Shown: positions 7,741 to 46,899 of the stretch, piece after piece
Numbering within the stretch: the stretch's first letter is position 1
Layout of the letters: the number at the start of each line of letters is the position of its first letter
Source of the DNA: Monocercomonoides exilis PA203
Lineage: Eukaryota > Protista > Preaxostyla
Assembly: GCA_001643675.2 (NCBI GenBank)
Contig: LSRY02000013.1
Span: 1,612,001-1,676,000 of the forward strand
Direction of reading: 5' to 3'
Length of the DNA stretch: 64,000 bases
Translations under genes and position numbers: made by a program
Notes under the pieces: model-generated
What the model was told of the DNA's origin: nothing
Seen by the model: the letters and a program-made list of their open reading frames with translations, nothing else
The model's database searches: none

Positions 7741-7749
7741 GGGTGCGGA

Positions 7750-20968: not shown

Positions 20969-21660
20969 TTATTTCAATTTACCAGTGTACAGATGAAATG
21001 AAGAAAAAAGACAAAACTTTAAAAAAAAGTGAAGAAAATTACATAAAATCAATAAATGACAAAAAGAATCAGTCCAATTGCAAAGCTTCATTTTTTTCAC
21101 AAACATAAAGCAAATTAATTGTTCCAATTCAGTATGCTCCAGAAACATGAAAAGCTGACAATAAAAATTTCCTCCGACGCTATTCGCTTTGCATTTCTGG
21201 AATTCACATTTACTGAACCTGACACATGATTTAATATTATAAGCATCCATCCCTCCTCCATAACAATTTTGAGCAGAGCATTCATTGAACGAGTTGTTCT
21301 CAATCTTGATGGAATTTATTGAAACACACATAATACCTCCACCGCCATAATGTGCATAGCAGTTGTTGAACTTACAAAACTTCACTGAAAGTGTTCCTGA
21401 TGCCAGATTATACATATTAATCGCCCCTCCACTCGAAACTCCATCTGAATAAGATCCACTTGTCCCAGTGGTTTTTGACCCATTCCACACACACAAAGTA
21501 AACGAATTCGCCCAATTGTCTGCTATCTGCTGTCTCGCTGGTTTCGAAGAATTCCCTTCACTCCCATTGACTGCAACATTCTGAGAGCGATAGCACCTGA
21601 CAAACGAGGTGTTCGAGGCATCCAGGGAAGATGATGAGCTGCTCAGTGAAGGGGCAATGC
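20969..21660 (-). pseudogene. Internal fragment of a GGAI/FxxC repeat surface-protein gene inside the 20117 element
   Basis: SSGGAINMY...FNNCYAHYGGGG...FNECSA...GGGM...FQKCKANSVGG; no proper start or end. Confidence 0.7.
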
Positions 21661-22939: not shown

Positions 22940-23520
22940 CTTCATTCTCCTATCGGCTACCATCTCTGCCTGTTTCCGTACCTCGTCACAAACTGATACC
23001 CAAAGTGCATCCGCTCCTTCTTCACAAGCGTCGAAAAGCCAGCAATCGTCCTGGAGAATGGATCCAGTAGCAAGAATGCGAGTGAAGTGATGGTGAGTGT
23101 CCTGTCCCAGCCATCAGCGCAGTGAGCAAGCACATTCCACCCGCCTTGAACTGCTTGTACGACTTCGAGTGCAGAAAGCAGGTGCACCTGGATGTTCTCC
23201 AGCCAGCGTGATAGCTGTGACAGAGCGTAGAAGACCTCGGCATCGATCTCGCGTTGCGCCCACGCCACACACGCAGCACGCATAGAGCACATGCACGTGC
23301 GCATGGAATGGAGGTTGGGGATTGCAAAGTTTCGGCACTCCGCAAAGGGATAGTTAGACTCGGATTCGGACTCGCTGAAGATGAATGACTGGCCCACGGA
23401 ATTCAGTTTTGGGCGGAGGTCGAGGATGAGAAGGCGATCTTTGACGGGAGGGGCAGAGGAGAAAGCAACGGGGGAAGAGGTGGTTGTGCTTTTGGTAGTT
23501 AGTGGATAAGGAGGCAATGA
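22940..23520 (-). pseudogene. Captured myotubularin-family phosphoinositide phosphatase catalytic fragment
   Basis: LLILDLRPKLNS, ESESNYP, IPNLHSMR, SRWLENI, VLAHCADGWDRT (HCSDGWDRT-type motif), LLLDPFSRTIAGF and FGYQFVTRYG, embedded between Ser-rich, stop-interrupted sequence. Confidence 0.9.
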
Positions 23521-25799
23521 AGAGGAAAAAGAAGAAGAGGAAGAAGAGGAAGAAGAGAAAGAAGAGAAAGAAGAGGAAGAAGAGGAAGAAGAGGAAGAAG
23601 AGGAAGAAGAAGAAGGAAGATGAGGAAGAAAGAGAAGAAGAATAATACGATGGCGATGAAGATAAAGGTATCAACGAACGTGGTAGCATCGCCTGTTTTG
23701 TCTCTTCGGAATTAAGTCCGCATGCTTCACAGCTCCTCCATTCCTTTGCAACCATCCTTCCAAAGCTCCTCCTTTCCATCGTTCTCTCACACAACACATT
23801 CCTCCTTTTCCCTCTTCTCTCCTCTTCTTGCCGCTACAACCCCTCACAGAATCTGTTGGCGAATTCATCATTTTAACAGGAATTTAATTCAACTTTGCCA
23901 CCTTCTCCATTTCTCATTCAACTTTCCTTCTTCATCAACATCTCTTTCTTGCCACTGCCCTGCACTAAAAAATCTTGCAATCACACCAACCTCCATTTCA
24001 GCCTACCAATTCCTCCTCCCATTTCTTGCAGAATGCAAACAAAACAAACAAACATACAAATCAACATACAAATCAACATATAAATCAACAACCAAATAAA
24101 TAAATAAATAAATAATAATGAGACAAACATCAAATAGATAATATGAATCACAATTTTTTTCGTTTATTCACATTCTTCTTTGGAATTATGTCACTTTCAT
24201 CATAAAGTCCATTAACATCATTTTCGCTTTTAATTCCTTTTCAAATTTCATTGCTTCTCTTTATCCTCTCGATTCGTCCTAAATAAAATGTTCGTCCATA
24301 ACATTAATAAAGTTTTAAATAACAATACATAAATTTATAAACCTCATAATTTCACTAAAAATTATATAAATCAATCAATCATTCATTTTTTGATGATAGT
24401 TCATACAAATCATGTAAAAAAGTTAAATCATTAAATCATACTCAAATATTAATCAAAAATATTCAATAACTGAGCTTGAAGGGAGATGTTATGCAACATA
24501 ATTTTGATATAAATAAAAACTAAAAAATTAAATGTTATAATGGTATTTTCAAGATTTTCTCAATTTCACTTATTTTTCAATAATTCCTTCACACTTCATT
24601 CACATTTCACTTATTAACACATATTTGAGCTTTTAATTGCTCATACCACAATTATGAAAAAAAAGATCTTTCTTCGAACAAAGTTACGATATGAAAAATA
24701 ATGACCCATATGCATATTTTGACTTTCTCGGAAATTTAAATATAAATAATGTTTTTGATCAAAAATGAAATAATAAATTATCGGATTTTTGATCAATAAT
24801 AAAGATCGAGTGAATTTTCATGATCGAATTTCGCAATTTCCCTCCTTGAATCGCTCAGTTAAATTATGCAGATTAACGCTATGATATTCAAATTTTGAAA
24901 AAATTCAAACTGAAAGTTGTACAATTTACACCTATGCCCAATTTTTTCATAATTATTCAAGAATTGTGAATCAAAAAAATCTTCATTAAAAAAAAAAGAC
25001 AAACACAAAATCTATATTGTTAAGAAACAATTTCAAATTGAAAAATAAGAGAGAATGAAAAATCAAATACAGTCAAGCTCGGTTATAATCACAATCCATT
25101 TTGCACGATTTTCTGTGATTATAACAGAACTTGATTATAACCGAACCATCTTTTTCATAGAAAAAATTTTCTGAAAAAATTTTTTGAAGAAAAAAAAGTA
25201 AATTTTCAATATTTATAAAAATCCACACTAGACCTGTGCGATACGATATGCAAATTTTGGTTGCTGTCGGTCACTAAAAAAAGAAAAAAAAATTCATATA
25301 TTATTTTAGTGAGGATGTCAATTCTTCACAATCAATTAATTTCTTAAAGTTTATTGCTAATTATTGAGTTATTTTTATCATTTGATCAAATGATCCATAA
25401 TAATATAAATGGATAAACAAAACACAATTTTCATCAAAATATGTTATTTATCATCTTAGAACTTTTGAATTGTGTAAATACATATATGAAGATATCCAAG
25501 TCAATATGGGTGATTTTTTTTGATATCATAAAAAAAGATCAAAAATCGAAAAAATAATATATATTGTGGTTTCATTGATCATAAAATAAAAATTGATTTT
25601 TCATAAGCATTTATCATTTATTACTGTGATATATATGTGTTTAATAATTTATTCAAAAATACATATCTATTTTTATGTTTAAAGAAAAAAAGAATTTATT
25701 TATTAAGTTTCAAAAAAGAAAAGAAAAGAAAAATAAATCTTAAAAAGGAAAATATAAAGTTCAAAAACTTGTTTTTCAATAGAAATACTTAAGAACATT

Positions 25800-28700
25800 A
25801 TTAATGAAAATTTGAGAAGATTGCAAAATGGATAAAAAACTCTTGATTTCTAATAAAAAATGTTTGTTTTCTCCAGTTCTTTAGCGAAAACAGTTCCGTC
25901 AAATCTCCGTTCCAGCTGTGAAGCTCATAAGCATCAGCGAACGGAGAATGGAATGAACAGGAGATAAAAATTATGAATAAGGCAGATTCAATCTTATCTT
26001 TTCTCTCTATGTTCTTCATTTGAACTGCCCTCCCTGCTTCCTTTATTTGCCACACTTCCTCCTTCTATTTCCAATCTACTTCTTCCAAATCCTTCGTTCG
26101 GAAATTATTGTTGATGATGAAAGCATCTTTCTCGAGCTCTTTCTTTTCCTCTGCCATCTCCTCCGTCAAACTTTCTCTCCTTTGGAATCACCTTCTGCTT
26201 CATGAGAAGCATTTTCTCAGCCCAGCATAACCAGCAAATAATCTCTTGAAAATGTTTATTATTCACACAAAGTTCACAGGTTGCTTCATGAGCGAGGAAG
26301 TGAGGTAACAAGGCCAGTATCTAAAGAGATGTGCATTTTGTGTGTGAATCCCTTGTCGCTTCTGTGAAAGAGCCCTTGTTCACTTTCATGTGAAACATCA
26401 CTCAGAAAGACAACTCGGTTGTTGGACATAACAGAACAGAAGCATTCGGTAATTGGAATTTCGATTTATAAATCTTTATCAACGGGCATACAGCTGATAA
26501 TGAATGCGTGGAAAGAATACTTGGTATCAAAGAAATGTATTGCTGGCTATCAAAGATGTCCTGCAAGAGGACACAAAACGCGATGTGTCTTCTGGAGAAG
26601 GTGCAGATCATAAGGCAGAAATCATTTCATCAGCTAACTTGTCGGTGAAAATATGTGCAAATGAAGGCAAAGCCGAAGATATTTGAAGAGAAGGCACACA
26701 AAATCGAAGAAAACATCTTATATGTGCATTTGATGAAATCAACATTGCTTGTCGGGGTTTATTTTCTTGTTTCATAGAATTATCCATTAAATATGCCTTT
26801 TCAAATAAATATGTTTCCTTCATCGTTTCATCTTCTCCGACATATTGAAGGCGTGTGACGTTGTGAAACCTGCCGAATGCTATTTTTGAACTCATCCATT
26901 TCATAAAAGAATTGCTCTAATACTCTTTCTTTTTAATCTCCGCCTCTTTCAGCTTCCAAACAAAAAAGGCAAAATCGTCCTCCTTTTTTGATTTCGCGCC
27001 GACTGATCAGTTTCTTTCGACAAGAAATCACATCTGTTGTTATAAAAACTTGGCCACATATCGCAATAGAATGAATATGCCTTTTGTGCTTCCGAAAAGA
27101 TAATAAAAGATGATGCTTGGTCCTGGATTTAACGGGAGTTGAAGAAATGAGAAAATAATTTGCTAACTCGGAAGCTCTGCTGAATTGAATAAAACAGACA
27201 TTTCACTAAGTCGATGCTCTGATCCAATGCCAAATAAGAAGAAACATAAAAGAAGAAGTTGAAAAATAGTTGAAGAAGGTGTTGATGACAATGATGACGA
27301 GGATAAAGAGGGATATTCTGCTTTTAATAAAGTTCATTGCTGAAATGAAGTGGATGCGACTGACTATTTTGATGATGAAGAGGAGGCGGTGGTGATAAAA
27401 GGCTCGTTGAAAGTGAAAAGTTGAATGAGAAGAGTCTCAGACAGAGATGAAATACCATGCAGATAAATTGATATTTTCTTTCCCCTTCCCTTTTTTCTAT
27501 TTTCTCATGCTCTTTCTTCTTCTTCTTTTTCTTGTTTTCCTTTCTTCTGGCATCTACCATCTCCGGGATCTTCACCTGTTCTCCTAAGACCATGTTCTTC
27601 GCAGTCAGTATTCGTTTCATCTGCTCGTCAATCTCTTCTCAGTCAATAGTGACTTCTGCTCACTCCAGCTCTGTCAGCTTCTTGATCATCTCTTTGTTCT
27701 TGTAATGTTCCTCGATCATCTTGTATTTCACTTCTAGCAGAACAGCTCCTTCCTCTCTTTCCTTCCACAAGCCTCCCAAACACTCTGTTCTCTCTTTCTA
27801 TTTGCACAAATAAAACAACTTTCTCGTTTTTGTTGATTTGTATCATTCTTTTTCCATTTTTTCTTTTCTGTTATCTCTTTCAGTCTCATCTGCATTTTTA
27901 TTTATAGAAGCACTTTCGTTTTCTTTGATTTCATCATTTTCAGGAATTTTTTGTGTTATAGATAGACTTCCAAAGATATATCCGCATTCTGTTTCTTTTT
28001 GGTGGCATTTCTCTTCTTCCAATTGAACACTTCTTGTAAGATCTCTTTCTGTCCATCAAAATTATCTTTTCTTTCGCCAATTACTTTCACAGAACAGCTT
28101 TCAATCTTTTCTCAAGCTGAAACTCTTCTTTTTCTGTCTCTCTTTCATCATCTCTAATATAACTTCCTTTCCCCCTTCTTCTTCTCATTGTTCACCATCT
28201 CTTCCTCACATTCTTCACGGCTTCTTTATTGATATCCGATCATCTTGTTTCACTTGTCCATGTCATCCTCCTCTTCAGCTGCCCCAACGCAAACTGAAGC
28301 TAAATCTTCAACTTCTCCGAAAAATTCACGAAATGTTATTAATCCAACACAGCTTCGCACCTGAGTCACTTCTCTTAAATAAACAAATAATGATATTCGA
28401 ATGCCCAACACACATCTCAATGAATTATACACAGAGATTATGTCCATTTCGCACAAAACGTCAGAAACAGGAGAGGATAACTTGGCAGCTGAAAGAGGAG
28501 TCAGCGCAGATGATAGATGTGCCTGTGGAGCAAATGTCAGTGACATTTGTGAAGAAGTGTTCGAAGAACAGTGAGCTTTTCCAATGTCAGAAGACTTTTA
28601 TCACTTGAACAATCCATTGGAGATCCGAAAATATAATTTGAAGGCAATGTGATCTTTTGCTCTTTTCTTTTCTGGCGCATTAAAGAATTTGGTGTTTCAA

Positions 28701-31453
28701 ACCTTGCATTTTGTATTTTTTTCTTCGATTGCTCTAACGATATAAGCTGAAGATAGTAAAAGAAGATCTCAATTTCCTTAAGATGCTCGGCACAGTTCTC
28801 TTTGTTCTGAAGTTGCAACTGCATTCCCAAAGGAGGCAGACGAGCTGCGCTGCCTTGCATGTTCGTTGCTCCTGTTGGAATAAGCCCTTGAATTCATTGA
28901 ATATCCTGTGATTGCATAAACACCTGTTGCACCATTCCCTGTTGAGAATACAATGGAAATGAAACTGAACAAGAACCAGAAGAAGAGCCAGTAGACGGAT
29001 TCAACAAGGGAGGAAGAGAAACATTCACTTCGCTTTCTTCATTTTCATCAGTCATCCTTCTTCCTCCATCACTGATGCTTCGAGTCTCCTTCAGCAGGAT
29101 CAGGTTCCTTTTGTTCTCTCTTGGTGTTCCTTTCATGGCAGACATCGTTGGAATGAATTGGTATATCTCAAACGCTTCTCTCTTTTCTCTTTCTGCGAAA
29201 TCCTGACCTTCTGCTCCGCTTTTTCCTGTGCTGCTATCTCCAGCGCCTGTTTCGTGGTTTCATTGAGTGGAATGCTACTGGTCAATGTTCGTGACTGCAA
29301 TTTTGACGCAGCAGCTGCTTAAAGCGGATCAACAGACTGCCTTGCAAGCGCCAACATAAACTGATTCTCTTTGTTTCTCGCTTTTTCCAGGATATGGCAG
29401 AACTGCTCAAGTCGAGAGGCTGTCTGAATACCCTGCGACTTCGTCATGCGCTCAATGATACTCGCTCTCGGTGGCTTCTTGCGGATGCTTGGCTGATGCG
29501 GGGTAATTGCCAGTGAGGAGGAAGATGAAGATTGAGAAGGCATTGGAAAAGAAGAAGGAATTCCTTTGATTTTTCCAAGTTGAGAGTGCTGTGTGGAGAG
29601 TGAGGCGATGATGGAGTTATCATCAATGCTGCCTGAGTTAATGTTGGATGTAACAACATTAGATAAAGAGGATGAAGAAGAAGCATTCATAAAAGATGAA
29701 CGATGTGTTGAAGGGAAACGATGACACGAAAAAATCTGCTATCCTTCTAAACTTACACCAACACCATTGAAGAAAGAAGACGATGAATAATTCTGTTCTG
29801 AAATTGAAGAATTTGAGAAGGAGGAAGTGAAAATTGCATCTCTGATGTGAAATTGAAGTGAAGTGTCAACGAATTGTGCAGCTATTAGTGTACGCAGCTC
29901 CACAACACACACACATTTCTCTCATTCTGCAATTTTTCCCCTGATCGGCTGAATCGTCTCAACATGTGACATGATCAGCAGATGGCTTTCTTCCTCGTCA
30001 AACAGAATGTCACTCTTCTCTCCTTTTTCGAATGCTCTCTTCTACAGCGCCGTGTGCCTCCTCACAAGAGAACATTCCAGACAAACCAGACTCCGCTCCA
30101 TGTCTCCGCTAGCCACACTTCCAAAGCCAATTCGCTCATGTGACAACTAGCACAGCTGTCCGAGCAGCGGAGAAAGAGGGGCTTAAATCGTTGTCTTTTT
30201 CTCATCTGCTAGCAGCTCTGCTTTTTCCTTTGCGATAAAGTCGTCGCTTGTCAACAGCGCTTGCAGCACTGGCTCCATGTGCCTACGATGCTTTCTATTT
30301 CATTGCTTCTTCCTCTTCACCTGAGCCTCCTCCAACTGCGCATATATTCATCCCATTCATTGCGCTGTATCTAATTCCCAGCTTGATCGGAATCCTAACC
30401 AAATGATCTATTTTCGTCAGCGAATGGAAGCTCCAGAATATCATTTGCTTCCCAAAAGCCGGTGCAATCCCTCTCATGGCAGGGCACTCAAACAGAGTGA
30501 AATCAGTTGCCGACGCATTCAGACGCTCCACTTCAGTCAGGTTGAGTCAGCAGTCAACGCTTGTCCCTCCTTCATTCTGAAGCACGATTGACTGAATCTG
30601 CATATTCACCTCGCAGATTAGCACCTGTTCCAAAAAATGCATTGCAGTCTTCTCTGCTCCTCGCCCGATCTCAAACACAGCATGCTCATCTGTGAAACTC
30701 AACGTTTGCAACGCAATCTTCAAAACGTATTGCTTCCCAGCGGAGCAGCACTTTAATAGAATTACAGGTGCAGCAGATTCTGTAGCAAGTGCATAGCAAC
30801 CTCTGTGAAGATCAGCCCATCGAAGTAATTGAATGTGTCATCGTCAGGTGTAAGCTCGCGGGTAAACGCGTTACTCAACTGGTTCAAAGACAGCTCTTTT
30901 CACACAATCACCTTCTCCGTGTTGTGGAGGTGCACGTCCACAACAGCCGCGGAGGGGAGGATCTCCAGGCCAGCCACCACACACAATGCAGTTTCGTTGT
31001 GTTTGAATTGTATTCATAACATTTCGCCGGTTTCTTGCTCTTCTTCCCGACTCTGTAACAATAAAGAAGAAGCAGGAGAAATTCAAGCAGATTGAAATGG
31101 ATCGTAAATACCTCTGTCAGCGTTGAATTTCTCTGGACAATAATTTCTTTTCTCTTTGTCATTTCAATCACACGCACAACACGGCAAGTGTGCATGAACG
31201 AAGTAAATAGAGGAAAAACACTTTGATTCTTTCGTGAGATTTTGTTGAAATGACTTCGCTTTGTGGCAAAACCGATAGAATAGGTAGAGTAGTTGAAGGA
31301 AAAGCAGAAAGAGAAGCAGCAATAGAAGAAGCAGTAGAAGGAGGAAGAGGAGGATAATATCATTGGATCAGAAAAACGAAAAAGGAGAAAAAGGAGAAAA
31401 AGTGGAAGTATGTGGGTTGAAAATGATGAAAGATTCATCAAATTATTTGACAT
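25800..31453 (-). pseudogene. Decayed cargo gene(s) in the left arm of the 21-kb element, unidentified
   Basis: Coding-like composition with many short minus-strand ORFs broken by stops; no confident domain. Confidence 0.4.
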
Positions 31454-32231
31454 AAATGAAGAACAGTTTGGATTGAAAAAGTTGAGGAAGAAGAAGCATA
31501 AAAGAAGAAATGAATCATACTTGAATTTTGTTTACCAAAAAACAAAGTTCCTTTCCAGAAAAATCAAATCAATTAATATTGTCATTCACCCATTTCGAAT
31601 TTTAATTTTTTCGTTGATCGGGAATTTGCAGAAATGATAATTTTTTCGTTCAGAATGGTATAAATGATATAAAGAAGTGATCAATACGCGTAAAAACGAT
31701 TTCTGCAAATTTCCAAGTAATAAAAATCTTTCATTGATCAATAAGATCAAAGTGAACATTTTTCGGAATGATTATTTTTAAAGACACATTTTCATAAATA
31801 TTCTAAATTCTTAAATTTCAATCGATGAAATAAATTTTTGTTGTTTGTTATTTGTCATTATCGAAAAAAGAAAATTTTGAAAAAACTTATCATTTTTCAG
31901 AAAAATAGTTTTAAAAAAATCCTATTTTTGCTTTCGTCATTTTTTTTTAAATAAATACAAAAATAACTGTTATATTTATTAAAATTTTGATTGAGATAGT
32001 AATGCTGATTTTTTGTTTTATAAATGATATTTTTTATATTTCTTTTTAATAATTTTTTTTATGTTGTTTGATGTTAATATAATTTTCTGATGATGTGGAA
32101 AAGGAAAGAAGATTAGGTCAGTGTGGACTTGTAGACAAATTTCATTAGGATATTTTTGCGTAATAAAAAATTTTTTTCCGAAGCTCTTTGAATATTTATT
32201 TTTCAATTTTTCATGGAATAAACACAAAGCC

Positions 32232-32282
<51 letters not shown>

Positions 32283-32355
32283 ATTATAAATTCAAACAAC
32301 AACATATAAATTTATATTACCATCAAACCATAATTAAAATACTTTCAAAATAAAA

Positions 32356-34729
32356 ATGCCTTTTTCAAAACCTCAATCAACTCTTAATTCTCGATGCAAA
32401 GTTATTTGGAACGAAATTAAACGAATTGGCGGAGATGACGTTGATTCGTTGCTCGTATATCTCTTTTACAACTATAGGCAATCATCTTCAGTAATTAATG
32501 ATTTACTGAAGTCTTTGAATGGTTTGGTTTTTTGTTTTTTTGTATTGTGTTATAAGTATTATTATTTCTCTCTGTTATTTTTTTTCTTTTAATTTTGTTT
32601 ATTATATATTTTTTTTGAAACAGAATATCACACAAAGCTGCTGGAAGACCTGTCTGTGGTGTACAACAACGCACCGTTGCACACTCAGACAACAATGCTA
32701 CAAGCGCTGTCCCGCAACACATCATTATCCGATTTACAGGACTATGGATATGATGTCACAGAGGGAAAATTTATATATGCCAAACAAACGCTAAAAAAAA
32801 ATCAAGGCTTTATCATTCCTCCTCAAAAACCTCATCCTCCGTCTTGCAAAAGTGGTTTGTGTTTATTTAATTTTTTTGAATAATTTTCTCTGTTTATTTA
32901 GGTTTGAATGAACAGGATTGGGAAAAGGGCAACAACTGGATGTTAGCCCATTCGACTGAAGCTTCAACTTCGCTTCAGTCAGCAAAGAAAAAGCAGCGAG
33001 CTGAGCCAGAATATGTCAGATACATCGAAGAAGAGGCTTGGGAAGAAGAGATCATTACTGAAAATTCATCTCAAAGGAAAAAACAATCTTCTTCCTCTTC
33101 AACATCGTCTCAACAAAATAAAAAATCTAATCCCATTTCAGAAAAAAATTCTCCATCTTCAAATTCCTCTTCTTCTCAAGCTGTTGATGCTCCAATCAGT
33201 ACTCCAACAAGGAGAGAAAGGGGTTCAACAAAAAGAAAAACAAAGAAATTACATCAAAAACGTCATTCGTCTCCATCTCCAATTCCAATTCACAAACTAT
33301 TCAAACAGAAAACAACATCATCCAATTCCTCGTCTTCCTCGTCTTCCTCGTCTTCCTCATCTTCCTCATCTTCCTCATCTTTCGCAAAGAAACAGAAAGA
33401 ATATTTAAATTCTTATGCAATTGAAGAATCTTCAACTTCCTTTAATAACGATGATGTGTGGGTTTGTGAACAATTAGTGGATTATGCTACTTCACCCACA
33501 TTAATTCCACCTCAAGCATTTCAAACTCTCTTTTCTTCATTTTCAAAAGAGAATGACATTTCAATACATCAACAACAAAGCATTCAATCTTCAAATAAAG
33601 AAATATTTCAACAAAGAAATTCTTCAAAAAATATTTCAAAAAAGAATGCTAAAGAAAAGTCAATTAAAAATAATTCTCATTCTCAATCTTCTTCAAATTC
33701 ATTAAATTCTTCGAAAACATCATCACAAATAACAAATGGATTACCAAACTTGGGAAATACTTGCTATTTGGCTTCTCTTCTGCAATGCATGTCTTCTATC
33801 ATCACGCAAAAACCATCTTTTATCAAAAAACAAACAGTTATGAAGAACACATCTTCGCGTGTTGTAAGTGTTTGTCAACAACTGGTTAAAGATGGAATGG
33901 CAGTGCGTTCGTGGATCCCATCGCTTATCAACAAATGGGAAGACTTTTGTGGATATGGCAGCAGGCAGCAACAGAATGTGATAGAAGCATTTGAAAATCT
34001 TCATCAACTTCTTCAAAAAGATGAGTTGATAAGCAAGGATACCTTCAATCCTGTGCTCATTACTCATTTCAAATGTCAAAAATGTCAAAAAGTTTGTAAT
34101 CATTTCAATGAAGCCTGCAGTTATGTTATCATTAATTCATCATCTCCTCATAAAGGTCTATCTTCTATCTTTTCAACTGAGATATTGAACGGAAAAAATG
34201 CTGTCTATTGCGATGAATGCAAGGAAAAATGCTGTGCTGCGAGATGGGAGGAAATGGCTGCATTTCCAGAGGTGCTAGCTCTCTGTCATGAATGCACTGA
34301 TTCTGCTAGTTCTGCGCCTTCGAGAACGCTTCTAATTGAAACTGATCGCACTAACCAGCGCACGTTCTGCAAAGGGTTTTTAACAGAAAACATTCAACAT
34401 CTTCAAGAGAGCAATAAGGAAACTATCATTTATCATCTTTCAGGACAAATACTATATAAACGTCTGGATCAAAAAAATGGACATTACGTTGCTATTGTTA
34501 AAAGGAAGAGTGGAATCAACAGTTTTTGGAGTATTTGCAATGATGAAAATGTTTCTGAATTCGATAGTGACAAATGGAGTTCTTCATGGAAAGATATTTA
34601 CGCTCAGGGTTTCATTCCTTCACTTTCATTTTTCACAAAAGAAAAAACAAAGCCGACATTATCAGCAACTCAATTTGGTGGTTCTTCATCTTCTTCAGAA
34701 ACATTAAATGAAAACACTTCATTCACCTT

Positions 34730-34788
<59 letters not shown>

Positions 34789-36152
34789 TCATCACACCAC
34801 CACATCAAACTTCTTCCATTCCTCCACTCTCTTCGTCAATTTCAACAAATTATGGATTGGAAGCACTGAAAGAAAAAAGAAAGAAAACGGGCATCTTTTC
34901 TCCCAATGAAAAGAGATTAATCTTCAAGCCCAAAACGAAACTGTGGAGTGAGTTTACAGAAGAAACAAACATCAAAGTTTCTCTTTCCCACTTCTACAAA
35001 CTCACCACGAACTTTTCCAAAGCGAAAAGACGAACTGACCTTTGTGGAATGTGCGAGAAGCTCAACTATCTGGAAAACAAATTAAAGTCATCGCAAAACA
35101 AAAATGGACTTTCTTCTGCTGAGTTTCACACTCTGAAACTTCTTCGACAACATCGACTTGTTGCAGAAATGCAACGCAAACACTATCAATCTTCTGTCGA
35201 AAACCTGAAAGAGGGAGAAACAGTCTTCGTCTTCGACTTCAAAGAGAAATGGAAACTCCCCATCAGAAAAAATCAACTTCAACAAGAATTCTTTAATTAC
35301 CAACAAGTTTCTCAATTCACAATCATCTCTCTTCAGAAAATTAATAATCAACAAATAAAAAGAACTTTCAACTTCTTCTCCGACTGCCTCTCAAATGATC
35401 ACAGATTTGTCATTGAGTGTCTGGAATCTGTGATCAAAAGACACTTCTTCTCAGACACTCACACTTTTAAGTTCTTCTGCGATTCGGGACTACACAACCG
35501 AAATCGCTTCCTTCTTCACTTCATCCTCTCCAAACAATCGAAACTTCTCAAAAAGAAAAATACTCAACTCAACTTCTTCGCTGAGCACCATGGAAAAAAT
35601 ATATGTGACAGTGAATTTGGTGCGTTAGTGAATGCAATCGACAACAATCTTTCGACTGAACACATCACCACACTTCGTGATTTGATCAACTTCTTCGAAA
35701 ACAATATGAACACTTCGACATCAGCTTCTTCAACTTCACAATCAAACATTTTCTCAACAACATCATCAAACTCTTCACCATCAACAACATCTGTCAATAA
35801 CTGTGAGCATGAGAGGTACTTTGAAGAGTATGTACCATCTCAGCAAATTTCATGGCCATCACTGTCAGTCCCTCACATGAAGGACTATTTATACTTTGAG
35901 CGCAAGGGCTCATTTGTCTGCGCATCTGCTGTTGGATATCTTCCTCAACGCTCTCTGGTTGCCCTCGAATCTTCGACAATGAAAGAAAAGGTTCAACGTT
36001 CAAGAAAGTCATTTCACTCTGATATCACATCATCTAACTCTTCTCTTCTTTCTCAATCTTCTCAAGATCTTCTTTCAAGGAGATTTGAGCTTCTTCTTGA
36101 CTCTTCTTCTTTTAATGAATCTCAAAATTGTTCTTTTGGTGTCCCCTATTAA
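32356..36152 (+). CDS. USP (peptidase C19) deubiquitinase-Sola2-like DDD transposase fusion; exons 32356-32521, 32624-32854, 32902-36152; about 1215 aa
   Basis: The three ORF pieces join in frame through two phase-1 GTTTG...AG introns. The USP Cys box is GLPNLGNTCY (Cys codon 33762), followed by QQQNVIEAF (QQD-box equivalent), CxxC pairs, the His box GHYVAIVK (His 34482) and WSICNDE. The C-terminal part has TDLCGMC, VFDFKE (D 35235), FSDCLSND, FFCDSG (D 35481) and FFAEHHGKNICDSEFG (D 35607), which match Sola2-type motifs as I recall them. There are no internal stops. Confidence 0.85.
32522..32623 (+). other. Spliceosomal intron 1 of the USP-transposase gene
   Basis: GTTTGG donor, T-rich body and ...GAAACAG acceptor; removal restores the frame (LN-E-YHTKLLEDL). 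Confidence 0.8.
32855..32901 (+). other. Spliceosomal intron 2 of the USP-transposase gene
   Basis: GTTTGT donor and ...TTATTTAG acceptor; removal restores the frame into the 1082-codon ORF (CKS-G-LNEQD). Confidence 0.8.
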
Positions 36153-37397
36153 GAAACTAGTTGTTGTGTATGCTTAGCTGGCACTCTATCGGAAGGGTGC
36201 TGGACATGACTGTTCGTATTAGATATTGCAGCCTTTGGGCTGCAATATCCGGACTTGGATACGACGAACAGCCTCCCAGGTGCACAATAGTTAGAATCCG
36301 ATTGTTTTCTTGTGGTTTTTGTCCCTATATTGTCCCTATAATAAAATTGGTTATTGTCCCGCATATATTTGTATTTATCGAGATTCATTAATAGAGAGAG
36401 TTGTGAGGGAATTCATTGATCTTTGGGTGAGGTTTATGAAAGCGAGAGTTGTTGAGAGTGTGAAATGTTGTCTTATCATTGTGTCTGTCTTTTTTCAATG
36501 TTGGATTTGATCTTTTTGAGTCAAAGGGAGAGAAATATCAGAAAGTGCAGAGTGGATGGAAAACAGAGGGAAAATAGACAAGTTAGTTTTTGAACTTTTT
36601 GTATGAGTTTTCTTTTTTGTTTGGAATTGTCTTTGATACCTTTTATTTGTTGCAATAGTACTGTTTTTTCTTATATCTTTTATTGTTCAAAATTGTTGAC
36701 ATTTAGTTAACATTTGGTGATTGTTTTGATGATTATGTGATGGAATTATGTTTTTTTGAAAGTTATTGAATCTGATTAGAAAATATCTGACTGTTTTCAA
36801 TTTTATTAATGATCAATATCATGAAGTACTTTTTGTTTATTTATGTCATTTTGATTGGTGAACGATTGTTAATTTTTAACGTATTTTTTTCGTTTCACAG
36901 ATCTTTTTTCCATTTCGAAAAAAACTCAAATTCGAATATACAAACATTTTTCTGCTTGAAATTATTTTTATTTCTTCCATATTGCAATATCATATATAGA
37001 AAACCAACAAACTCAAAAAAAAAAACATCATGAATTTTTACAAACAGATCAACAAAAAATTTTTTGCATTAAAAAAAGATCTCAATGATCATGAAAACTT
37101 TTTTTATGACGTGGAAATTTGCAGAAATGGTTATGGACCTCATGAAATACTTCGACAACATATAAATATTATCTAGGTGTATAAAAAAAGCATTTCTGCA
37201 AATTGCAGATCAATAAAAAAATTGAAAATTGAAATGGGATTTCAATTAACAAAAATGTTTGAAATTTCGTGTTGATACTTAATTTTCGGAATTTTTCTTA
37301 ATTTGCCAAAGATTCTATTATACATTTTTGAATATTTCTTTCGCTTTTCTTTGTGGAGATTCTGTGGCTCTTTCTCGACTGAAGTCATAGTTGAATT

Positions 37398-40300
37398 TTG
37401 TTGTTTCCCGTTTCTTATGGAGAGAAGCAAATTATTCTATGTTTGTCCTTCAAGGCATTTTGTTTGTTTATTTATTTTTTAATTTTAATTATATTTCCAA
37501 GTCTTTTATTTTCTTCTTCTTCTGCCTCATTGAATGTTGGTTTTCCAGCTGCATCTTTCCCGATTTCAAGTGATCAAACCAAGAATCCCTCTTCATCATC
37601 ATTTTCTTCTTCTTCTGTTTCACTGCTGAGCATGCCATCAATTGCATTCGGAAGAGCACTCAAACGAAGCGGAGGGAGAAAAGCGCTTGCTGCCTTCAAG
37701 CGGACAGTTCGTATGAAGACATACACAAACTCAAGAATTGCTCCACCAGAGTTCAAATCAGAAGTGCTAGGGCTGACAAATAAGATGGGAGGAAGTGGAA
37801 ATAACATCAATAATAATAATAACAGCAAGAAGAAGAAGCTATTACGTGTGGGGATGTGGCAAGTGCTGCTGGCTATTCCAAGAGGAAGACCACCGAAGAT
37901 GCGGAAGAAGAAGATGATGACAGCGATGGGGCTGAGTCAACAGGTGCAGAAGAGCGAAGGAGGAGCAAGTGCAAATGTGACTGTACAGTATTCGAGGTGT
38001 TTGGAGTCAGCTGCCGCGGCATTGGAGAGTTAGAGGAAGCTTGGAAACAAAGAGAAAGTGAAAGAAGATGAGAAGGGAAAAAGGAAAAAGGAGAAAGATA
38101 AGGAAAGAATTATTTCAGTGTTTGATGAGCTTCCTTCAGATGAATAGGAGTTTTGAAGGCAAAGAGGAGCAAAGTGCAGAGGGAAAGCGGGAGTGAAAGG
38201 GGAAAAAAAGCGAAAGGAAAAGCATTCCAATCAAAGACAAGTCCGATGATGGGTTCATAAGCTGTCCTAAGTGAGCTTCTTTCGAAAAAGTTGGAGCTGC
38301 TTTGTGTGGCAGATGGCAGCATCACATTTGACTCTTCTGAATCTGACACTCGTGAGACAAGTGGAAGAAGCAGAAGTGACATTGAGTGGAATGGCTATGA
38401 CGAGGAAGTGGATGATAAGGAGGAAGAAGAAGAAGAAGAAGACGTGGAGTTAGACAGGATTCTTAGTGCAAAGATATCCATGACAAGCACACAGGCAAAT
38501 CGGCAGACACCGAAAAAGATCAGATTTGTTTTTGAATATGGCACCTCTACCACATTCAACTCAGCAAAAATAAGAGAAAACAGCTCAATCGAAGCAACAT
38601 TAATAACAACTGAGATGAAGGACAGGGAGAAAAGAGATTCACTTAAGAAATTGATGAAGAACACACTGAAGCAGATACATGGAAGGATCATTCCAACAAT
38701 CAATCCAACCGATATTAGACTTTATGCAAATCTCGTTCAGGAAGAGGAAAGCAAGGCAAAGAAGCAAAAAAGAAAGTTCTTGCCGAGAGGGAAAGGGAAG
38801 AACATGAACTATTTGATTCGAAATGAAGAGAGGAAAGAGTGAGTGAACGGAGCAGGTACAACAGACACTGAAGAAGCAGAAGAAGACAGTGAAGATGATG
38901 ACAACGACGATAGCGATGATAGTGACGTTAGTGATGATGAAGACAGTTTGTATTTAACACGATCTGCTAACTCCTCAAATGCCTCTTAAACAGACAAGGC
39001 AGCAGAAAGAAAAGAAGACACAAATACACTCCTTGCCCTGCTTTTCTCTAGCAAGCAGCGAAAGACGCTTTCATCGGAATCCCTAAAGAGCAATCAGAAG
39101 TCGCATGTTTCTTTCTCACCCACCTCAACCATCTTCAGCGGAGAGCTCAGTCCGACTCCTCTGCCTCTGTCGCTCCTTCAGCCAAGCTCACAAGGAAAAT
39201 GGAGAGAAAGAAGAGGAAGAGAACACAGTTGGCTCAGACGGCAGCAGAGAAGCCCGGCAGAACCCACCAGAAGACACAGCAACCACAGCTTGGCGGCTGT
39301 TTCTGTGTCACGAAGACATCTTGTCCTGTCTGCCATCAGAGCAGCACTCGGCAGAGAATTGCAGGCACATCTCAGAGCAGCTGCGGAAAACGGGTTTGCG
39401 ATAGCTTCTTCTTCTGCAAGTGTGTCTTGTTAGGCGGCATGCCAATGCAAATGGAGAAGATAGAGGAGGAGGAGTAGATGACCTTGGGAACAATTCTGTG
39501 TTTGGGGAGAAAAACAAACAGAAGACAGGGCCGAAGAAGCTGTTTGTGAGGTTGATGAACAGATTGGGCAGGATGAAGGCGCTTCTTTGCTTCACTCTCT
39601 CGGAAAGGCACTCTTCCATCTTTTCAACCAGCTTTGGTCACCTCAGCTTCCAAAGCAAACAACCATTCCTTCTTCGCATGCCGGGACAACAGGGGGAATA
39701 TTGGCAAATGATGCGAACTCGTTTCTGAGCCTGTTGTGTGGAACGAGGCTGTTCAGCTTGGGAGGAGAAGATACTGTGAGAGATATGCAACTGGTGGAGA
39801 ACATGAGAAAGTAGATGAGTTTGTGGAGAGGAGAAGGAAGGGCAGCTGTGGAAGGAGTGTACGAGGCGAGAGACACAGCTGAGCTGTTCTGCGAAGAGAG
39901 GTGAATCTACAGCAACGAGTGTGAAGTGCATAAAAAGATCAATAGGAAGAATGACGACAATAACTTCTCTTTGGATGCAATGGAAAGAGAGTTATATGCA
40001 ATCAATGCGAATATTCTGCTTGACCCACTATTGTTTGCTTCGTCTGTCTTTTTCAAAAACCAACAACTTCTGCTGTCTGCCTCAGAAAATACAATTTTAG
40101 TTCCTCCTCAAAGAACGGCATATGTCCCATCCATCGGAGAAATTCTACTCGAACTGACAAATCCATCTTTTCAGTTTGCTCTGCTGCGTATTGAACGGAC
40201 ACAGAAAGAAGAGCAATATTCGACTCTGCCTTCTTCTCTCAAGTTTTCATGGGTGCCTCTTGTCAACATGTTCCCTCTCCCGCTTTTTCATTTGCTCACT

Positions 40301-41105
40301 TCAATCGTCCGCACTCTGCCTTCAAAGATTCTTTCAGTATCTTTCACTTCATCTTCCGTGTTCTCCATCCCTTCTTTATTCACATCCTGCGTCACTTCTT
40401 TTTCTATTTCTCAGTCCATGTAATCCTCCATCACAACACCTGCTATCATCTCATTCTCCACTCAGCCCATTAGCCCTTCTGCCGCCTAGTCCAATCGCCT
40501 GCTGCTTTGTCTGCTGGCCATGCGCACTGCACTCACTGCTGTTGCAACCGCTGTTCACAGGCTGATGGTGAAGGATGTCTTGTTCCACAAAATATCAGCC
40601 ATATTCGAGATGCACCAAAACCAGAAACATTCTTCTTCTCCTTCGATGTCCATTTCTTCCTTTCTCATTCAGCGGTTAAAGGCCGTTGGTGCTTCATTCA
40701 CACAACAAGTCACACCTTCCTCTTTTGCATCTTCTCAGCAAACATCTGAGTCTCAGTCAACTTCATTGGCATCGAATATTGCAACAGATGCACTGGACCT
40801 GAGTGGATCTTCAAATTCTGCTGCTGATGAAGCTAATACAACTTCTGTTGGCATGCGATAAATGCATAAGGAACAGCAAGTGGAAGAAGAGGAGAACTTC
40901 CCTATCAGATAAAGAAAGACTAATTCTCAGCAATTCTTCCACATCAGCTTCAGACAAGCGTCACCTCCTTTCAGTTACCTCTCTCTTCTCTTTCGCAATC
41001 TCCCTCTCCTTCTCCCTCTTCTCCGTCATTCACATCAAAAAATTCTCCATCCTCAGTTTTCCTCCCTTTTCCTTCGACTCATTCTCTCCCACTTCAGAGT
41101 CGTGA
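37398..41105 (+). pseudogene. Decayed cargo gene in the right arm of the 21-kb element, unidentified
   Basis: Chain of plus-strand ORFs (37398-38033, 38291-38842, 39926-40423, 40520-40861) with stops and frameshifts. Confidence 0.4.
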
Positions 41106-41379
41106 ACGGGTATCTTTTTCTTTTTCTTTTCTCCCCCATCTGGAGCAATTCCTGAGAATTCTACGACGCGAAGTCTATTTTTTCAAAATTCTTTCTTTTT
41201 TTCAAAGGATATTCTTTTATCTTCACCTGCAACTGTCCTACTTGCTCTGCTTATCTCACAGCTACAATCTAATTCATAATCTTCTTCTTCTTCTTCTTCT
41301 TCACCTCCTCCTACTCCTTCTTCTTCAATAACAGAAATAACACCTTTATCATCATCTTCTTCTTCTTCTCCTCCTTTCA

Positions 41380-44080
41380 ATAGAAGGTGATTCAATGAAA
41401 GAATTTGGCACAGCCGAAGACTCAGAAGCAGCTCTTCTGCAGCGTCTGGCATTGAACGAACTTGATTCCCGTCTCTCAGACGCAGAGCGAAGGTGGATTT
41501 ATCACTCCAACTTATCCTATTCACTTGGGTGTTCTGCACTTCCTATTGTGTCGCCATCTTCTCTTCTCACACCAGGCACGCAAATTCACTCGTTTCCTGC
41601 GCCTTCTGTCTCCTCTCTATTTCCCCCGCCGCCTCCCCCGCGCGTGTGCGAAAAATGACCCTGTCAGAAAGAGAAAGATTAAAACAGTTTGTGACCCTCC
41701 ACGTGCGCAACTGCCTCTTCCTCATCTGCACATTCTGTGGGAACAGCAACTGCCACCTCAGCTCTGCTACCACAGACGTCTTAGCCTCTTTCTTCAGCGG
41801 CGGCGACAGCATCGACGACCCTGACATCACAGGAGCCAAATGGGCAAAAGAATGCCTGCGCATCAGTTCCCCCACTGTCCAGCACGCTGCTTTGCTCGCC
41901 CTCAACCGCCTGGCTGAAACTCACCCGCCCTCAAAGTACTTCGACTTGTGGAACCCGATCTTTCCTGAGCTACTGAATGCAGAGCAGATGAAGAGGTACT
42001 GCGAGGTCGACCGCTCCCTCTCCGCCTCGCTTGTCGCGCTGTTTGCATCGTCTGCTGTCAGCTTTGAGCACATTTCAGTTGCAATGCCTCGCATGCTCCT
42101 TTCATTGGTATCCCAATCACAGCTCTTCAGACAACCGTCCTGCAGATCCTGTTGGAGGCAGCGAAGAGGGGAGAAAGCGAGCGTCTGTCGCTGGATTCCC
42201 TCAGAGCCATCGAGTGGGCGTCTGCAGGGCTGAGATCAGTTCCAGATGAGCTTATCTTTAACGCCCTGCAGTTCTTTGTGGTGATGCTGGGCACGATACA
42301 CAACCGGCCTGACGCTGATAGCGCCATCACTTCTATCACACGAAGGAGGGAATATAATGGAGAGCGGTTTGGCTGCCCCTGCGAAATGCTGGCAGTTAGG
42401 ATGTGCTCGTTCACGTTCGAGTCGATGCTGAAGCTGATCAACCCGCTCACGCACACGCCACGCACAGTCTCTTTGGCTGTTGCTTGCATTTCGACCTTTG
42501 CTGAACTGGGATTTGGAGCAGAAGATGTGATGGAAGACAGGATTGCGCTGCAGCTGTACCAGAAACCGGAGGAAAGGGCGTCGTTTTTCTTTTCTCTGGC
42601 TTCTTCTCCTGGTGGGAGTGGGAGTGGAAGAATAGCATCAGCAGCAAATGCGACGGAAGCAATGTATTCTTCTTCTTCCTCTCCCTTTCACTTTCCCTCT
42701 TCATATTCCTCTTCCGACCAAAAACTTCACTTCGACTCCGGCACCTGCTTCATCCGCCTTCTCATATCCCTCTTTTTCACCAAGTTCCCTTCCCTCACCT
42801 CTCTCTCTTCCCTCTCCTCCACCAGCCCCAACGCCTACCTCCGCCTCTACCCAACTCCTCCTCTCGTCTACGCCGCCCGCGCCTTAACCCACTTTGCCAA
42901 GCAAGACAGACGCATAGCACATTCTTTGTCTTCTATCAGAATCAGTTTCCCCTCCTGGCCTTCCACACATATCTTGCTCTCTTCTGTTGTTCCGCAGCTG
43001 CTGGAGACGATGGAGGGAATTAACTTGGCGAATGTGCTGAGTTTTGTGGCGGTTGTGTGTGAGATTAGCAGGGCTTTTAGAAAGCAGCTGGTGGAGATGG
43101 ATATCTTTGGGATCGTGCTGAAGATGACAAGAATGGGAGGGGAGGCGTATGCGAAGAAGAGGAAAGAGGAAGGAGAAGAAGAAGGAAGTAACAAAGAAGT
43201 GGATGATAATAATAAAGAAGGTGATATGAGAGAAACTTCCATAGATTCAGATAGAAAGCACGTATTCAGCCCAAGTCCGCTATCTCCTTCGAATTTTGCT
43301 CAAAATAATGCAACTTCAGAAAATAATCCCTTCATCGCCCAGATCGCTTCCCCAACCCCTCCAGAACTCATTCCTGCAGACATCAAAAGCAGCTTAAATA
43401 GAAAGCATATAACACCGCTGGATTCAGAAGAAGCTGAAAATGAAGAGAATGAAGAAGATAATGACAACGATAATGACGAAGGAAGTTCAAACGAAAGAGA
43501 AGAAAGAGACGATATTGAAATTGAAAATGAGGGAGAAAGAGAAAGAAGTTTAGAAGAAGAAGAAGTTGAGAATATCAGCAGACAAAGCAGAAGATGAGAA
43601 AGAAGAGAGGAAAGAAGAGCGATCACTGCCGCATCGCGGAATTCTCGTCGGAGTGTGCAGACAGCTAGCCGTTCAGTCGATGCTTTCTCAACAGCCTCAG
43701 CTGCTGCTGGCACACTCAATGCCTCATTCTCTGCTTCTTCTTCTTCTTCTTCTTCTTCTTCAATTTATTCTTCTTCTTCTTCAATTTATTCTTCTTCTTC
43801 TTCCTTTTCTTCTTCTTCACCTTCTTCTTCACCTTCTTCTTCACCTTCTTCTTCACCTTCTTCTTCTTCTTCTCCTTCTTTCTCCTTCTTGGATATTTCT
43901 TTTTCTACGCTTCTTCTTCTTCTTCTTCTTCTTCTTCACATTCTTCTTTGCCTTCTTCTTCTTCTTCTTCTTCCTCTTCCTCTTTCTATTTCACTTCTAC
44001 CACTACTACTTCTTTTTCTTCTTTTTCTTATCGTATTTCTTCATTTTTTGCATCTTCATAATGGATAACAGCAGAAATTA
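41380..44080 (+). pseudogene. Decayed ARM/HEAT-like helical protein gene with acidic and Ser-rich tails
   Basis: ORFs 41493-42233 and 42152-43597 (VQHAALLALNRL...LWNPIFPELL; LVEMDIFGIVLKM) overlap through frameshifts. Confidence 0.45.
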
Positions 44081-44249
44081 AAAAGAATGGAATTTATGAA
44101 GAAATCAACTTCTTTAAAAAAAATGAAAAGAAGATGATAAGTGAATGAAGAGAATGAAGATAAAGAGAAGAAGAATTTGTTTTGTCAATAAATGATGATT
44201 GGAAATTTGAAAGAAAAAAATGAAGATATTGATAAATGAAAAAGTTAAA

Positions 44250-46040
44250 TAGAAATGGAGAGAAGTTTGAAGAAAAGACGTCGACGAACAGCAACAGTAC
44301 GCGACATCGAACAAGAAGAGTTCGTTGAATGTCAGAACCATTCCGTCCGTTTCTTCTTTTTCATATGCTCTTTGGAGCATTGCAACAATCATCATGGAAG
44401 GGAATTGATTGGCGAAGCAGAGGAAAGAATATCCACCGTTTCGTTTCTATGTGAGTAAATGAAAGAGCATTCAGGAGCCTTTCCAGGGTTAGGCAATGAG
44501 GAGTACACAAAAGTTAGAGCAGTTGCTGTTGTGGAAGGTGGAGGGGTAATTCAGGATGGAGAGGCTGTCGTTGGTGAGTTGAAAGTGGCCTTCGAGCATG
44601 CTTCGACAGAGCTGGCCGAGAAAAATGATAGTAAAGATAAAGCGCATCATGATGAAGGAGATTTCTGACATTTTTATTCCAGAAAGATAAAGAAAAACTA
44701 TGCTTTTGCTAACAATGGCGAGGACTGTTATAAAAAGATGTTCGAAGATGCTTATTGATTCATCGTCAAGCATAAGCAAAGTTGAAGCAACTTTGAGAAC
44801 TGAGAGGTTGATGTGGAAGAGATTAAGGGAGTAAGCAGTGAGAGTACAAGAAGCATAAGGAAAGAGGCGAAAGGGATGAACAGGTGCGTTGGAGAGGTGA
44901 GTGGTGTTTTTGCAGGCACAAAGCAGTTTTGAGTTGAGGCAGACATGTTGGTTGGAAGGAGAAAAAAGGGATAATTCGAAGGAACAATTGAAGCAGAGGT
45001 GGCTTAAAGGATGATGCAGCCATTGAGAAACACAACGGAAGCCAACTGATGGTGTTCAAATGAACAAGATCAAGACTTCTGGAGATAAACCAGAATCGGA
45101 TTATGGAAAGAGAGATATGGGCTTCGAAAGAGAAGGAGGAGATCCAAAAGATATTGACGAGTGTTATCGATGCAGAGGATAATGGGCAAGCGGATGATCT
45201 GGTGGCTTGATCGACGAATATCTGTTGGACGCAGTAGAAGAAGAAGAGGATGAGATTGTGACCGGCATAGAAGTTGAGGCCGGGACGGGAGGAGTTGATG
45301 TCGCAAAAGGAGGCTTCTGTGACGAGAGAGAGTTGGAAAAAGTGAAGGAAAAAGAGGAACTCGTTGTTTGGGCTTGGATGCTGCAGCACTGGAGAAAGAT
45401 GCACTTGCCCGCAAAGGCGTTATTCAAGGCTTAGCGGAGAGCGAGGATGGAAACGGGGTTGGCAGATGCGACAGCTTTGTGGGAGCAGTCGAGAAAGAGG
45501 CAGTCGCTGTTTGTTGAGCAAGTGATGATGCACTGGATGAGGATGCAAATCAATGCGCGCAACTGGTGAACACTTACGCCTCGGCAGCACAGTCTTCAGC
45601 ACATCTCCTCTCCGCTTTCCCGCTTGAACTGTCCCGTTGCATGACAGCACGATGTTGGTGATGTTGGCAAAGTCCAAAGCGAAGACTTTTCTTATGTCTG
45701 TGGCCGCCAACCTCGAGACAGTCTTTCCGGCCAGTGTGGGTGGGCTGACAACATCGAGGGCAGCGACAGTGATCAAAGAAAACGAGACTGAGAGGGATTT
45801 GAGTTCAGAGGAAGTGGATGCAGAAACTGACACAATATACATGAAAAGGAGAGGGCGCAGTTGTTATAAGACACACGCACTTCAACAGCTTCCACAGTTG
45901 CATATGAAAAAGGTGTTTGTGGAGTCTGCATATAAAAAGAGCAGCCTGCAAAAGCCGAGCAACTGAGGAGGTAGTATCAGGATGAAGGATGAAAGACGAG
46001 GAAGATGATGAAGGATTGAGAGAGGGGAAAAAGAAAAAGT
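44250..46040 (-). pseudogene. Decayed ORF of unknown function next to the right TIR of the 21-kb element (paralogue of 5960-7740)
   Basis: RFIFTIIFLGQLCRSML...LTNDSLSILNYPST...FNELFL, PKQRVPLF and LLRPTDIR. Confidence 0.55.
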
Positions 46041-46899
46041 TCAAGTGAAGATTTTCGTTCTGTGGAAGATTAAAAAGTGTCTGAATGAGAAATTCTTAAA
46101 TATCATATTGTTTCTTTTGTAATTTTTTTCAATAGCTTTGATCAATTAATTTAAATAACTAATTTAAAGAATTATTAATTTAAATACAATTATTAACAAT
46201 GAATAATTGTTTATTCGACAAATATTATGTGCTTCCATCATATTTTTCTATATGTGTTAATGAAAATTATTCGTTTTCTATAAATGTTTCAAGATCTTCA
46301 TAGTCAATTTATAAATTACTTTGCATTAACATCATAAAACTAGTTTTTTTAAATAAAAAATTGATTGATTTCATATTGTTATTATTGTTTTCACGTTTAA
46401 AATACCAGTGAACATTTGTATCGTTCTGTTTATTGAATTATCGATATTTTCTATTAATTTTTTATGTTTTCTTCAAATTTTGTAATAAAAACAATTAAAA
46501 TCAAATTAAAATCAACAAATTAATAATTATAATTATATATTAATGCATATTTTCGCAAATTTTTTTCTGAAATATTTTCTTATAAACCAAACCCTTAATA
46601 AAATAATTTTTTGATCAAACTTCGTAATTTTTTATGATATCAAAAAAAATCACCCATATACAATTAAACTGCGATTCATTTTATTTAAGCTTGAACGAAT
46701 TCAATTCCAATGATGGAAGGGAATTGTTTTCCCATTGAAATCCACTGATAAAAAAAAGCAGAAGATATATTCGAGATGAAAATTCAGTGGTGTGTATAAA
46801 TTATTACTCAAATTCTTGAATAATGTATTATTTGTTAAATTTTATTTTGATGAATAATTTTTAAGCCTTGAACATTGTTATAAGGTTGTGCAAATAAAG

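Follow-up and report, generated by a model that had tools for sequence, protein, structure and literature searches.

A Putative Ubiquitin-Specific Protease Domain Inserted in an Internal Loop of the Transposase of a Giant Sola2 Element from Monocercomonoides exilis

Results

The window analyzed here, a 64-kb stretch of the Monocercomonoides exilis PA203 genome (contig LSRY02000013.1, positions 1,612,001 to 1,676,000), contains a transposable element of 21,148 bp (25508-46655) that we assign to Sola2 and whose transposase gene encodes a predicted ubiquitin-specific protease (USP; peptidase C19) domain in its interior. The gene comprises three exons (Table 1) that join into 3648 nt and encode 1215 amino acids (aa) with a single terminal stop, in agreement with an earlier, sequence-only reading of this DNA, which had proposed a stop-free spliced open reading frame (ORF) of about that length. 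The same reading needs correction in two respects: the gene is not the only intact long gene in the window, given the 405-aa ORF of a Merlin/IS1595 transposase at 13764-14981, nor is it free-standing, being part of a 21-kb element that has terminal inverted repeats (TIRs) at its ends and is flanked by a target site duplication (TSD). The closest proteins came from M. exilis, an oxymonad. Splicing of the gene was deduced from the conservation of its splice sites and from a public gene model. Both introns have the form GTTTG...AG, and their splice sites are retained in four other aligned copies, in which the intron interiors have diverged by ~25%. The donor site of intron 1 occupies the identical place in a distant metagenomic relative, and MONOS_13149, the public model of a sister copy, agrees with it exactly in the first intron and almost exactly in the second. 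Searches with the spliced model were run on its individual exons, and the domain encoded by exon 2, which probably binds DNA, was present in 18 relatives from other genomes.

The C-terminal core carries a DDD triad (Asp911, Asp993, and Asp1035, at nucleotides 35235, 35481, and 35607) preceded by a D-x-C-x2-C...H motif. The core has 630 relatives at an E value of <0.001; across 75 relatives, the three aspartates are invariant or near-invariant and the upstream motif is conserved. Pfam and PDB sequence searches returned no name for the core, and its nearest Atlas family was DUF7869 (0.95). An AlphaFold model built from the 75-sequence alignment reached a pLDDT of 90 and matched foamy virus integrase (Z score of 11.5, root mean square deviation of 2.9, 141 residues) and Mos1 (Z score of 10.9, 183 residues); a model from the single sequence was uninformative (pLDDT of 40). 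The alignment-based model gives the core the RNase H fold of a DDD transposase, which the sequence-only reading had named as a check on this region.

The motif series of Sola2_DFa-2 and Sola2_PPa-1 (PMC3627910, supplement 3), with LSSV..LRDFG, TEPSS, RSTFYKF, RTDxCxxC, DFKEN, FSDVLNH, WSDG, and HGKSxxD as the motifs compared, was found by inspection to have counterparts in the same order along the window protein, the first of these motifs being N-terminal, and the DDD spacing, likewise counted by inspection, is 82/42 here versus ~87/43 in DFa-2. The 4-bp AT-rich (AWWT) TSD is a Sola2 feature (PMC3627910) and a hallmark of Sola1 as well (PMC3845634), and it therefore cannot by itself separate the two. 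The TIR termini are GGG here and GAG in DFa-2. Reportedly, Bao described Sola2 TIRs in 2009 as having G-purine-G (GRG) termini. On the strength of the protein motifs, the 4-bp AWWT duplication, and the GGG ends, we classify the element as Sola2; the two reference proteins, DFa-2 and PPa-1, were compared by inspection, and the core tree consists of unlabeled relatives. The transposase type named by the sequence-only reading is thus borne out, motif by motif and by the modeled RNase H fold, and the gene reads as the autonomous gene of a giant, cargo-carrying Sola2 cut-and-paste transposon.

The Pfam UCH model (PF00443) recognized the USP segment at nt ~33738-34575 with an E value of 1.7e-14 and a score of 54.5 bits against a cutoff of 23.9, and it scored 57.2 bits in L002, an intact copy at another locus. 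All PDB sequence matches of the segment were USPs, the best of them weak and scattered over many USP subfamilies. The complete catalytic set that had been claimed for this domain is present at the expected places, i.e., the oxyanion residue Asn415, Cys420 (33762-33764), His660 (34482-34484), and Asn679/Asp680 (34539-34544), and the segment also has two CxxC finger pairs. A search for a host donor of the USP returned element copies only.

The position of the domain within the transposase follows from a comparison with insert-free relatives. The loop after the TEPSS-like motif spans ~25 to 28 aa in published Sola2 proteins versus ~650 aa (linker, USP, and linker) here, and the distance from the exon 2 domain to the CxxC is 76 to 120 aa in 14 relatives versus 712 aa here. 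When aligned to a profile of insert-free relatives, exon 2 falls on positions 61 to 129 and the core downstream of the USP starts at position 161; the N-terminal exons and the segment after the USP are therefore consecutive Sola2 pieces, as had been suspected. Together, the loop lengths and profile positions identify the USP and its two Ser-rich linkers as an insertion in one internal loop, not an addition at an end, which is what the sequence-only reading had proposed.

The window element belongs to a group of closely related copies, here called family A; at least 21 proteins in the database, from 14 contigs, are members. In all eight family A loci examined besides the window (L001 to L008), the USP lies between the same transposase pieces, although L006 has lost its N-terminal exons. 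The copies in the window and in L002 are stop-free; each of the remaining seven is interrupted by one to four stops or by a frameshift, and assembly errors could explain some of these interruptions. The exon indels of L001, L002, and L004 are all in frame. The catalytic Cys is kept in eight of the nine copies and the His, Asn, and Asp in all nine. Across eight copies, the ratio of nonsynonymous to synonymous divergence (dN/dS) was 0.195 for the USP (95% interval, 0.157 to 0.242), 0.10 for the core, and 0.54 for linker 1, and the dN of the USP was ~4 times that of the core. Both USP and core are, by these ratios, under purifying selection, and the per-domain analysis suggested by the sequence-only reading accordingly found constraint on the USP.

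With a dS of 0.97, the USP is twice as diverged at synonymous sites as the core (0.48), and FastTree trees of the linker, USP, and core disagree. Doubled dS and discordant trees indicate that family A copies are mosaics in which older USP haplotypes sit on more uniform cores, and recombination would be the simplest reading of this pattern. Contigs from two other studies, from a gut metagenome and under a second organism label, carry pieces that are ~88 to 97% alike across USP and core. None of the contigs listed bridges the TCA repeat between the two, and the contigs compared showed no splice joint. Since the copies differ in their linker lengths and flanks, an assembly chimera can be excluded.

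The ends of the element are well defined. Its 28-bp TIRs exceed chance expectation, as inverted matches in local shuffles did not surpass 16 nt, and window-type TIR ends were also found in L002, L003, L004, L006, and L007. Homology between loci stops sharply at points far from the transposase gene. Other complete family A copies measure 17.4 to 20.9 kb with matching TSDs (ATTT and ATAT); overall, the TSDs agree on both sides in four elements (ATAT, ATTT, ATAT, and AATT), and that of L006 has one mismatched base. In L004, the transposase gene runs in the opposite orientation with respect to the element ends. A total of 12 genomic copies, with TIRs and TSDs, dispose of the chimera and the single-copy domesticated gene that the sequence-only reading had allowed for. 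Beyond the transposase gene, the interior consists of decayed host-like gene fragments that vary between subfamilies, and the element yielded no second conserved gene, the shared interior pieces being decayed, host-like, and devoid of Pfam hits.

A second M. exilis family, family B, is represented by L009, a 15.1-kb element with its own TIR and an AATT duplication, and by further copies in L007 and L008. Its core is 36 to 43% identical to that of family A, and the USP occupies the same position in three copies. The family B USP shares 25% identity over 189 aa with the window USP, to which it scores 44.7 bits, versus 32 bits for the best PDB chain; these figures fit a single USP capture without proving it. 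In the core tree, a quick version restricted to relatives, families A and B form a clade with protein P0023 (SH-aLRT of 98), with the fork at the USP clade left open. The loop of P0023 is filled by an Asn-rich stretch.

Another relative, at locus L010 (run SRR25904989), has the same three-piece N terminus as the window protein and carries in the same loop an OTU-like domain (protein P0031, residues ~130 to 460); the ten best named Atlas hits of this domain belong to the OTU family or clan (~0.92), and the motif is visible. P0029, a near relative of P0031, has only a short loop. Length- and word-limited searches detected no fusion of a USP with a transposase among the relatives retrieved from outside M. 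exilis. P0031 possibly has a second OTU-like domain, and the L010 contig starts with a GGG-led, TIR-like sequence.

Table 1. Coordinates of the Sola2 element, its transposase gene, and associated features in the window
Feature	Position	Strand	Remark
Left TSD, ATAT	25504..25507	.	Identical to 46656-46659
Left TIR, 28 bp, begins GGG	25508..25535	+	Perfect match to right TIR
Entire giant Sola2 element, 21,148 bp	25508..46655	+	
Degenerate internal inverted repeat, left arm	31589..31748	+	71% over 165 nt
Exon 1, N-terminal helical region	32356..32521	+	Homologous exons occur in L009 and in L010 (OTU-bearing relative)
Intron 1, GTTTG...CAG, phase 1	32522..32623	+	Intron divergence, p of 0.26
Exon 2, conserved Sola2 N-terminal domain	32624..32854	+	Profile positions 61-129, E value of 4.8e-11
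Intron 2, GTTTG...TAG, phase 1	32855..32901	+	
Exon 3, 1083 open codons	32902..36152	+	
Last N-terminal Sola2 piece, ends STEAS; insertion starts after it	32902..32966	+	Matches TEPSS/TEESS and relative P0029
Ser-rich linker 1	32967..33737	+	Length varies via in-frame indels; dN/dS of ~0.54
USP/C19 domain (predicted)	33738..34640	+	Pfam UCH, PDB matches, dN/dS of 0.195
QFGG motif (aa 723-726), then Ser; candidate self-cleavage site	34671..34682	+	Invariant in family A, absent from family B
Ser-rich linker 2 with TCA repeat	34683..34889	+	
Sola2 catalytic region	34890..35930	+	D-x-C-x2-C...H (Cys847, Cys850, His883) and DDD triad
Structured element 3' of the stop codon	36165..36295	+	Fold z of -3.5; no Rfam match
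Degenerate internal inverted repeat, right arm	37078..37238	-	
Right TIR, ending CCC	46628..46655	-	
Right TSD, ATAT	46656..46659	.	

Inverted repeats other than the TIRs were considered as element ends and rejected. The degenerate 165-nt repeat at 31589/37238 has no TSD, and homology extends beyond it. This old repeat encloses a 5.65-kb block that includes the gene, and the homology of L003 ends at its right arm; it could be what remains of a smaller element that predated the present one. The inverted repeats next to the gene at loci L004, L006, and L008 were likewise discarded, as they lack common termini and a TSD. They are young internal inverted duplications of 0.6 to 1.4 kb (96 to 99.8% identity) flanking the transposase gene (L004, 6265-14762; L006, 7682-15660; L008, 7352-14011) and are easily mistaken for TIRs.

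Downstream of the gene, a ~130-nt element that begins 13 nt past the stop codon is predicted to form a multistem RNA, and an Rfam search of it gave no match. Its p-distance among copies is 0.03 to 0.09, versus mostly 0.10 to 0.19 farther downstream, and the last ~75 transposase codons have an unusually low dS (0.11). The variants found in L003 and L007 favor the plus strand, and a GGAAGG loop could pair with CCUCC downstream.

The window also contains other mobile DNA. At 13522-24938, perfect 196-bp inverted repeats surround the Merlin/IS1595 ORF together with host-like cargo; the outer ends of the repeats show no matching 8-bp TSD. Cargo at 16182-19043, like that at 12537-15453 in L009, is similar to large surface or receptor proteins of M. 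exilis, and the L009 cargo has a transmembrane segment. A 4.6-kb nonautonomous element at 20117-24707, with inverted arms of ~420 bp and an ATAT duplication, has GGG ends related to the Sola2 TIR and is probably mobilized by a Sola2 transposase; L002 carries an empty palindromic form of it (1950-2357). Further Sola2-family ends or pieces lie at 8376 (right end), 50013 (left end, with a long poly-T expansion), and 1-2466, the last being 99.6% identical to L007 4702-7165 and representing a recent duplication or transposition. In L001, an insertion of ~270 bp (7603-7872) that starts with ATTT-GGGACAT, a family B-like end, lies just upstream of the transposase gene. Finally, 53949-55224 is a near-perfect 9-bp tandem array of ~142 copies with several frames open.

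Discussion

The Sola2 element described here encodes, in one predicted spliced frame, a transposase with a putative USP placed between its N-terminal, probably DNA-binding part and its catalytic part. We give a roughly even chance to the explanation that the tethered USP deubiquitinates the transposase or its transpososome neighbors in cis and thereby spares the enzyme from ubiquitin-proteasome clearance. In this scheme, an ancestor would have captured a USP into the flexible loop between the two parts, and the spliced mRNA would now encode a single 1215-aa protein in which the two halves of Sola2 come together with the USP looped out between them on long Ser-rich tethers. The USP would then deubiquitinate, in cis, the transposase or adjacent proteins of the transpososome, such that the transposase could evade host clearance long enough to excise and insert elements of 15 to 21 kb. 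That a USP and, in another relative, an OTU-like domain, i.e., two unrelated deubiquitinase folds, appear to fill one slot suggests that it is the deubiquitinase activity itself that has been selected. The retention of the USP by selection across at least two diverged families suggests that these elements counter the host ubiquitin system.

Several observations weigh against this explanation. Canonical USPs contact the ubiquitin tail through the motifs QQD..E and L-K-R-F. In the family A USP, these are replaced by QQN..E and CHEC, and with such altered contacts, its substrate may not be ubiquitin. Moreover, P0023, the closest relative outside Monocercomonoides, has no USP, and most other relatives have no protease, which indicates that the protease is dispensable for Sola2 transposition generally. 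Finally, the OTU call for P0031 was not confirmed by Pfam and PDB searches.

The USP could instead act in trans at the element ends or target site, on ubiquitinated histones, PCNA, or double-strand-break signaling, and so steer gap repair or open chromatin. Its tethering to a DNA-binding protein and the reach afforded by the long linkers are compatible with such a role, and Bao et al. suggested that transposon proteases target DNA repair signaling (PMC2836005). The weak PDB matches, spread over many USP subfamilies, give no hint of a histone deubiquitinase, and we consider action in trans rather unlikely.

Somewhat more doubtful still is a processing protease that cleaves its own polypeptide after QFGG (aa 726/727) or prefers a ubiquitin-like protein such as SUMO or NEDD8. 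Self-cleavage, which might act as a switch or release the enzyme from DNA, would split the catalytic half off from the N-terminal half and the USP. The QFGG motif, which holds the sole GG after residue 26 of the protein, is invariant in all nine family A copies and in the 12 database proteins covering it, with only synonymous codon changes, whereas only 41% of the columns of the surrounding linker are invariant. The human USP1 offers an analogy, since it autocleaves at an internal diglycine (Gly670-Gly671), a cleavage needed for it to leave DNA (PMC8975806); both are USPs with an internal diglycine in a DNA-associated protein, and the likeness is one of analogy only; family B lacks the motif. 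The altered QQD and LKRF motifs would also agree with processing or a ubiquitin-like substrate. On the other hand, no GG was found in the family B frames checked, the motif was noticed post hoc with a chance figure of ~0.03 that presumes independent columns, and a cut at this site would leave the catalytic core without the N-terminal domain. A broader proposal, in which the Sola2 loop recruited unrelated deubiquitinase folds independently and the family A USP cuts its own transposase at QFGG as a proteolytic switch, seems doubtful to the same degree. Our literature search found a self-processing transposase with a built-in proteolytic switch for no cut-and-paste transposon.

It is quite improbable that the USP is a functionless host fragment, captured as Pack-like cargo and in frame only to keep the transposase open. 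The element does hold much decayed host cargo, its loop accepts other fillers, such as the Asn-rich stretch of P0023, and the USP dN is well above that of the core. However, selection for an open frame alone predicts a dN/dS near or above the 0.54 of the linker, against the 0.20 found, which largely refutes this explanation, and catalytic and zinc finger residues persist across two families whose USPs are only ~25% identical. A domesticated host gene or an assembly artifact is scarcely credible: the window copy, with a core 8 to 13% diverged from each other sampled copy, gives no support for recent activity, yet the many copies in the databases, the differing flanks with TIRs and matching TSDs, the copy-specific linker lengths, and the matching pieces in runs of two other studies refute both.

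The sequence-only reading knew of no fusion between a C19 protease and a transposase. Bao et al. in 2010 described such a case in Trichomonas vaginalis, XP_001314237.1, as transposase_11 plus peptidase C19 (PMC2836005), so that the fusion is not new in principle. Like the window protein, it joins a C19/USP domain to a DDE transposase in a metamonad protist; as far as its description in that paper allows comparison, it differs in belonging to another transposase superfamily (pfam01609 type). Other DNA transposons also carry ubiquitin or SUMO proteases, of other classes and in other transposon groups: Ginger1 has a C-terminal OTU or Ulp1 domain and Mutator an Ulp1 domain (PMC2836005), Helitrons carry OTU proteases (PMC2836005, PMC9741609), and the VTD domains of Helitrons are active K48/K63 deubiquitinases proposed to prevent proteasomal loss of transposition proteins (PMC9741609). 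The Ginger1 protease is an extra C-terminal domain, whereas the USP described here lies between the DNA-binding and catalytic parts. The closest elements compared, the dictyostelid Sola2 transposons DFa-2 and PPa-1 (Bao and Jurka 2013), are 10 to 15 kb long, with variable cargo and chimeric elements (PMC3627910), and share with the window element the motif series, short TIRs, a 4-bp AT-rich TSD, large size, and variable cargo. They carry a separate Fanzor1 gene as cargo, in contrast to the USP inside a loop, and the window element is larger, at 21 kb, with GGG...CCC ends. A literature search of incomplete coverage found no description of a protease in Sola2, of a comparable internal insertion, or of these M. 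exilis elements.

At 15 to 21 kb, the elements reported here widen the size range of Sola2 relative to the 10 to 15 kb of those compared (PMC3627910), and some of the 28.9 Mb of repeats left unclassified in the M. exilis genome paper (PMC8767320) may belong to this family. The reason for the presence of ubiquitin or SUMO proteases in many DNA transposons has been an open question since at least 2010 (PMC2836005). With an apparently intact transposase and USP in one polypeptide, two stop-free copies, and defined ends and TSD, the M. exilis elements make this question directly testable, and their protease-free natural relatives would serve as ready controls.

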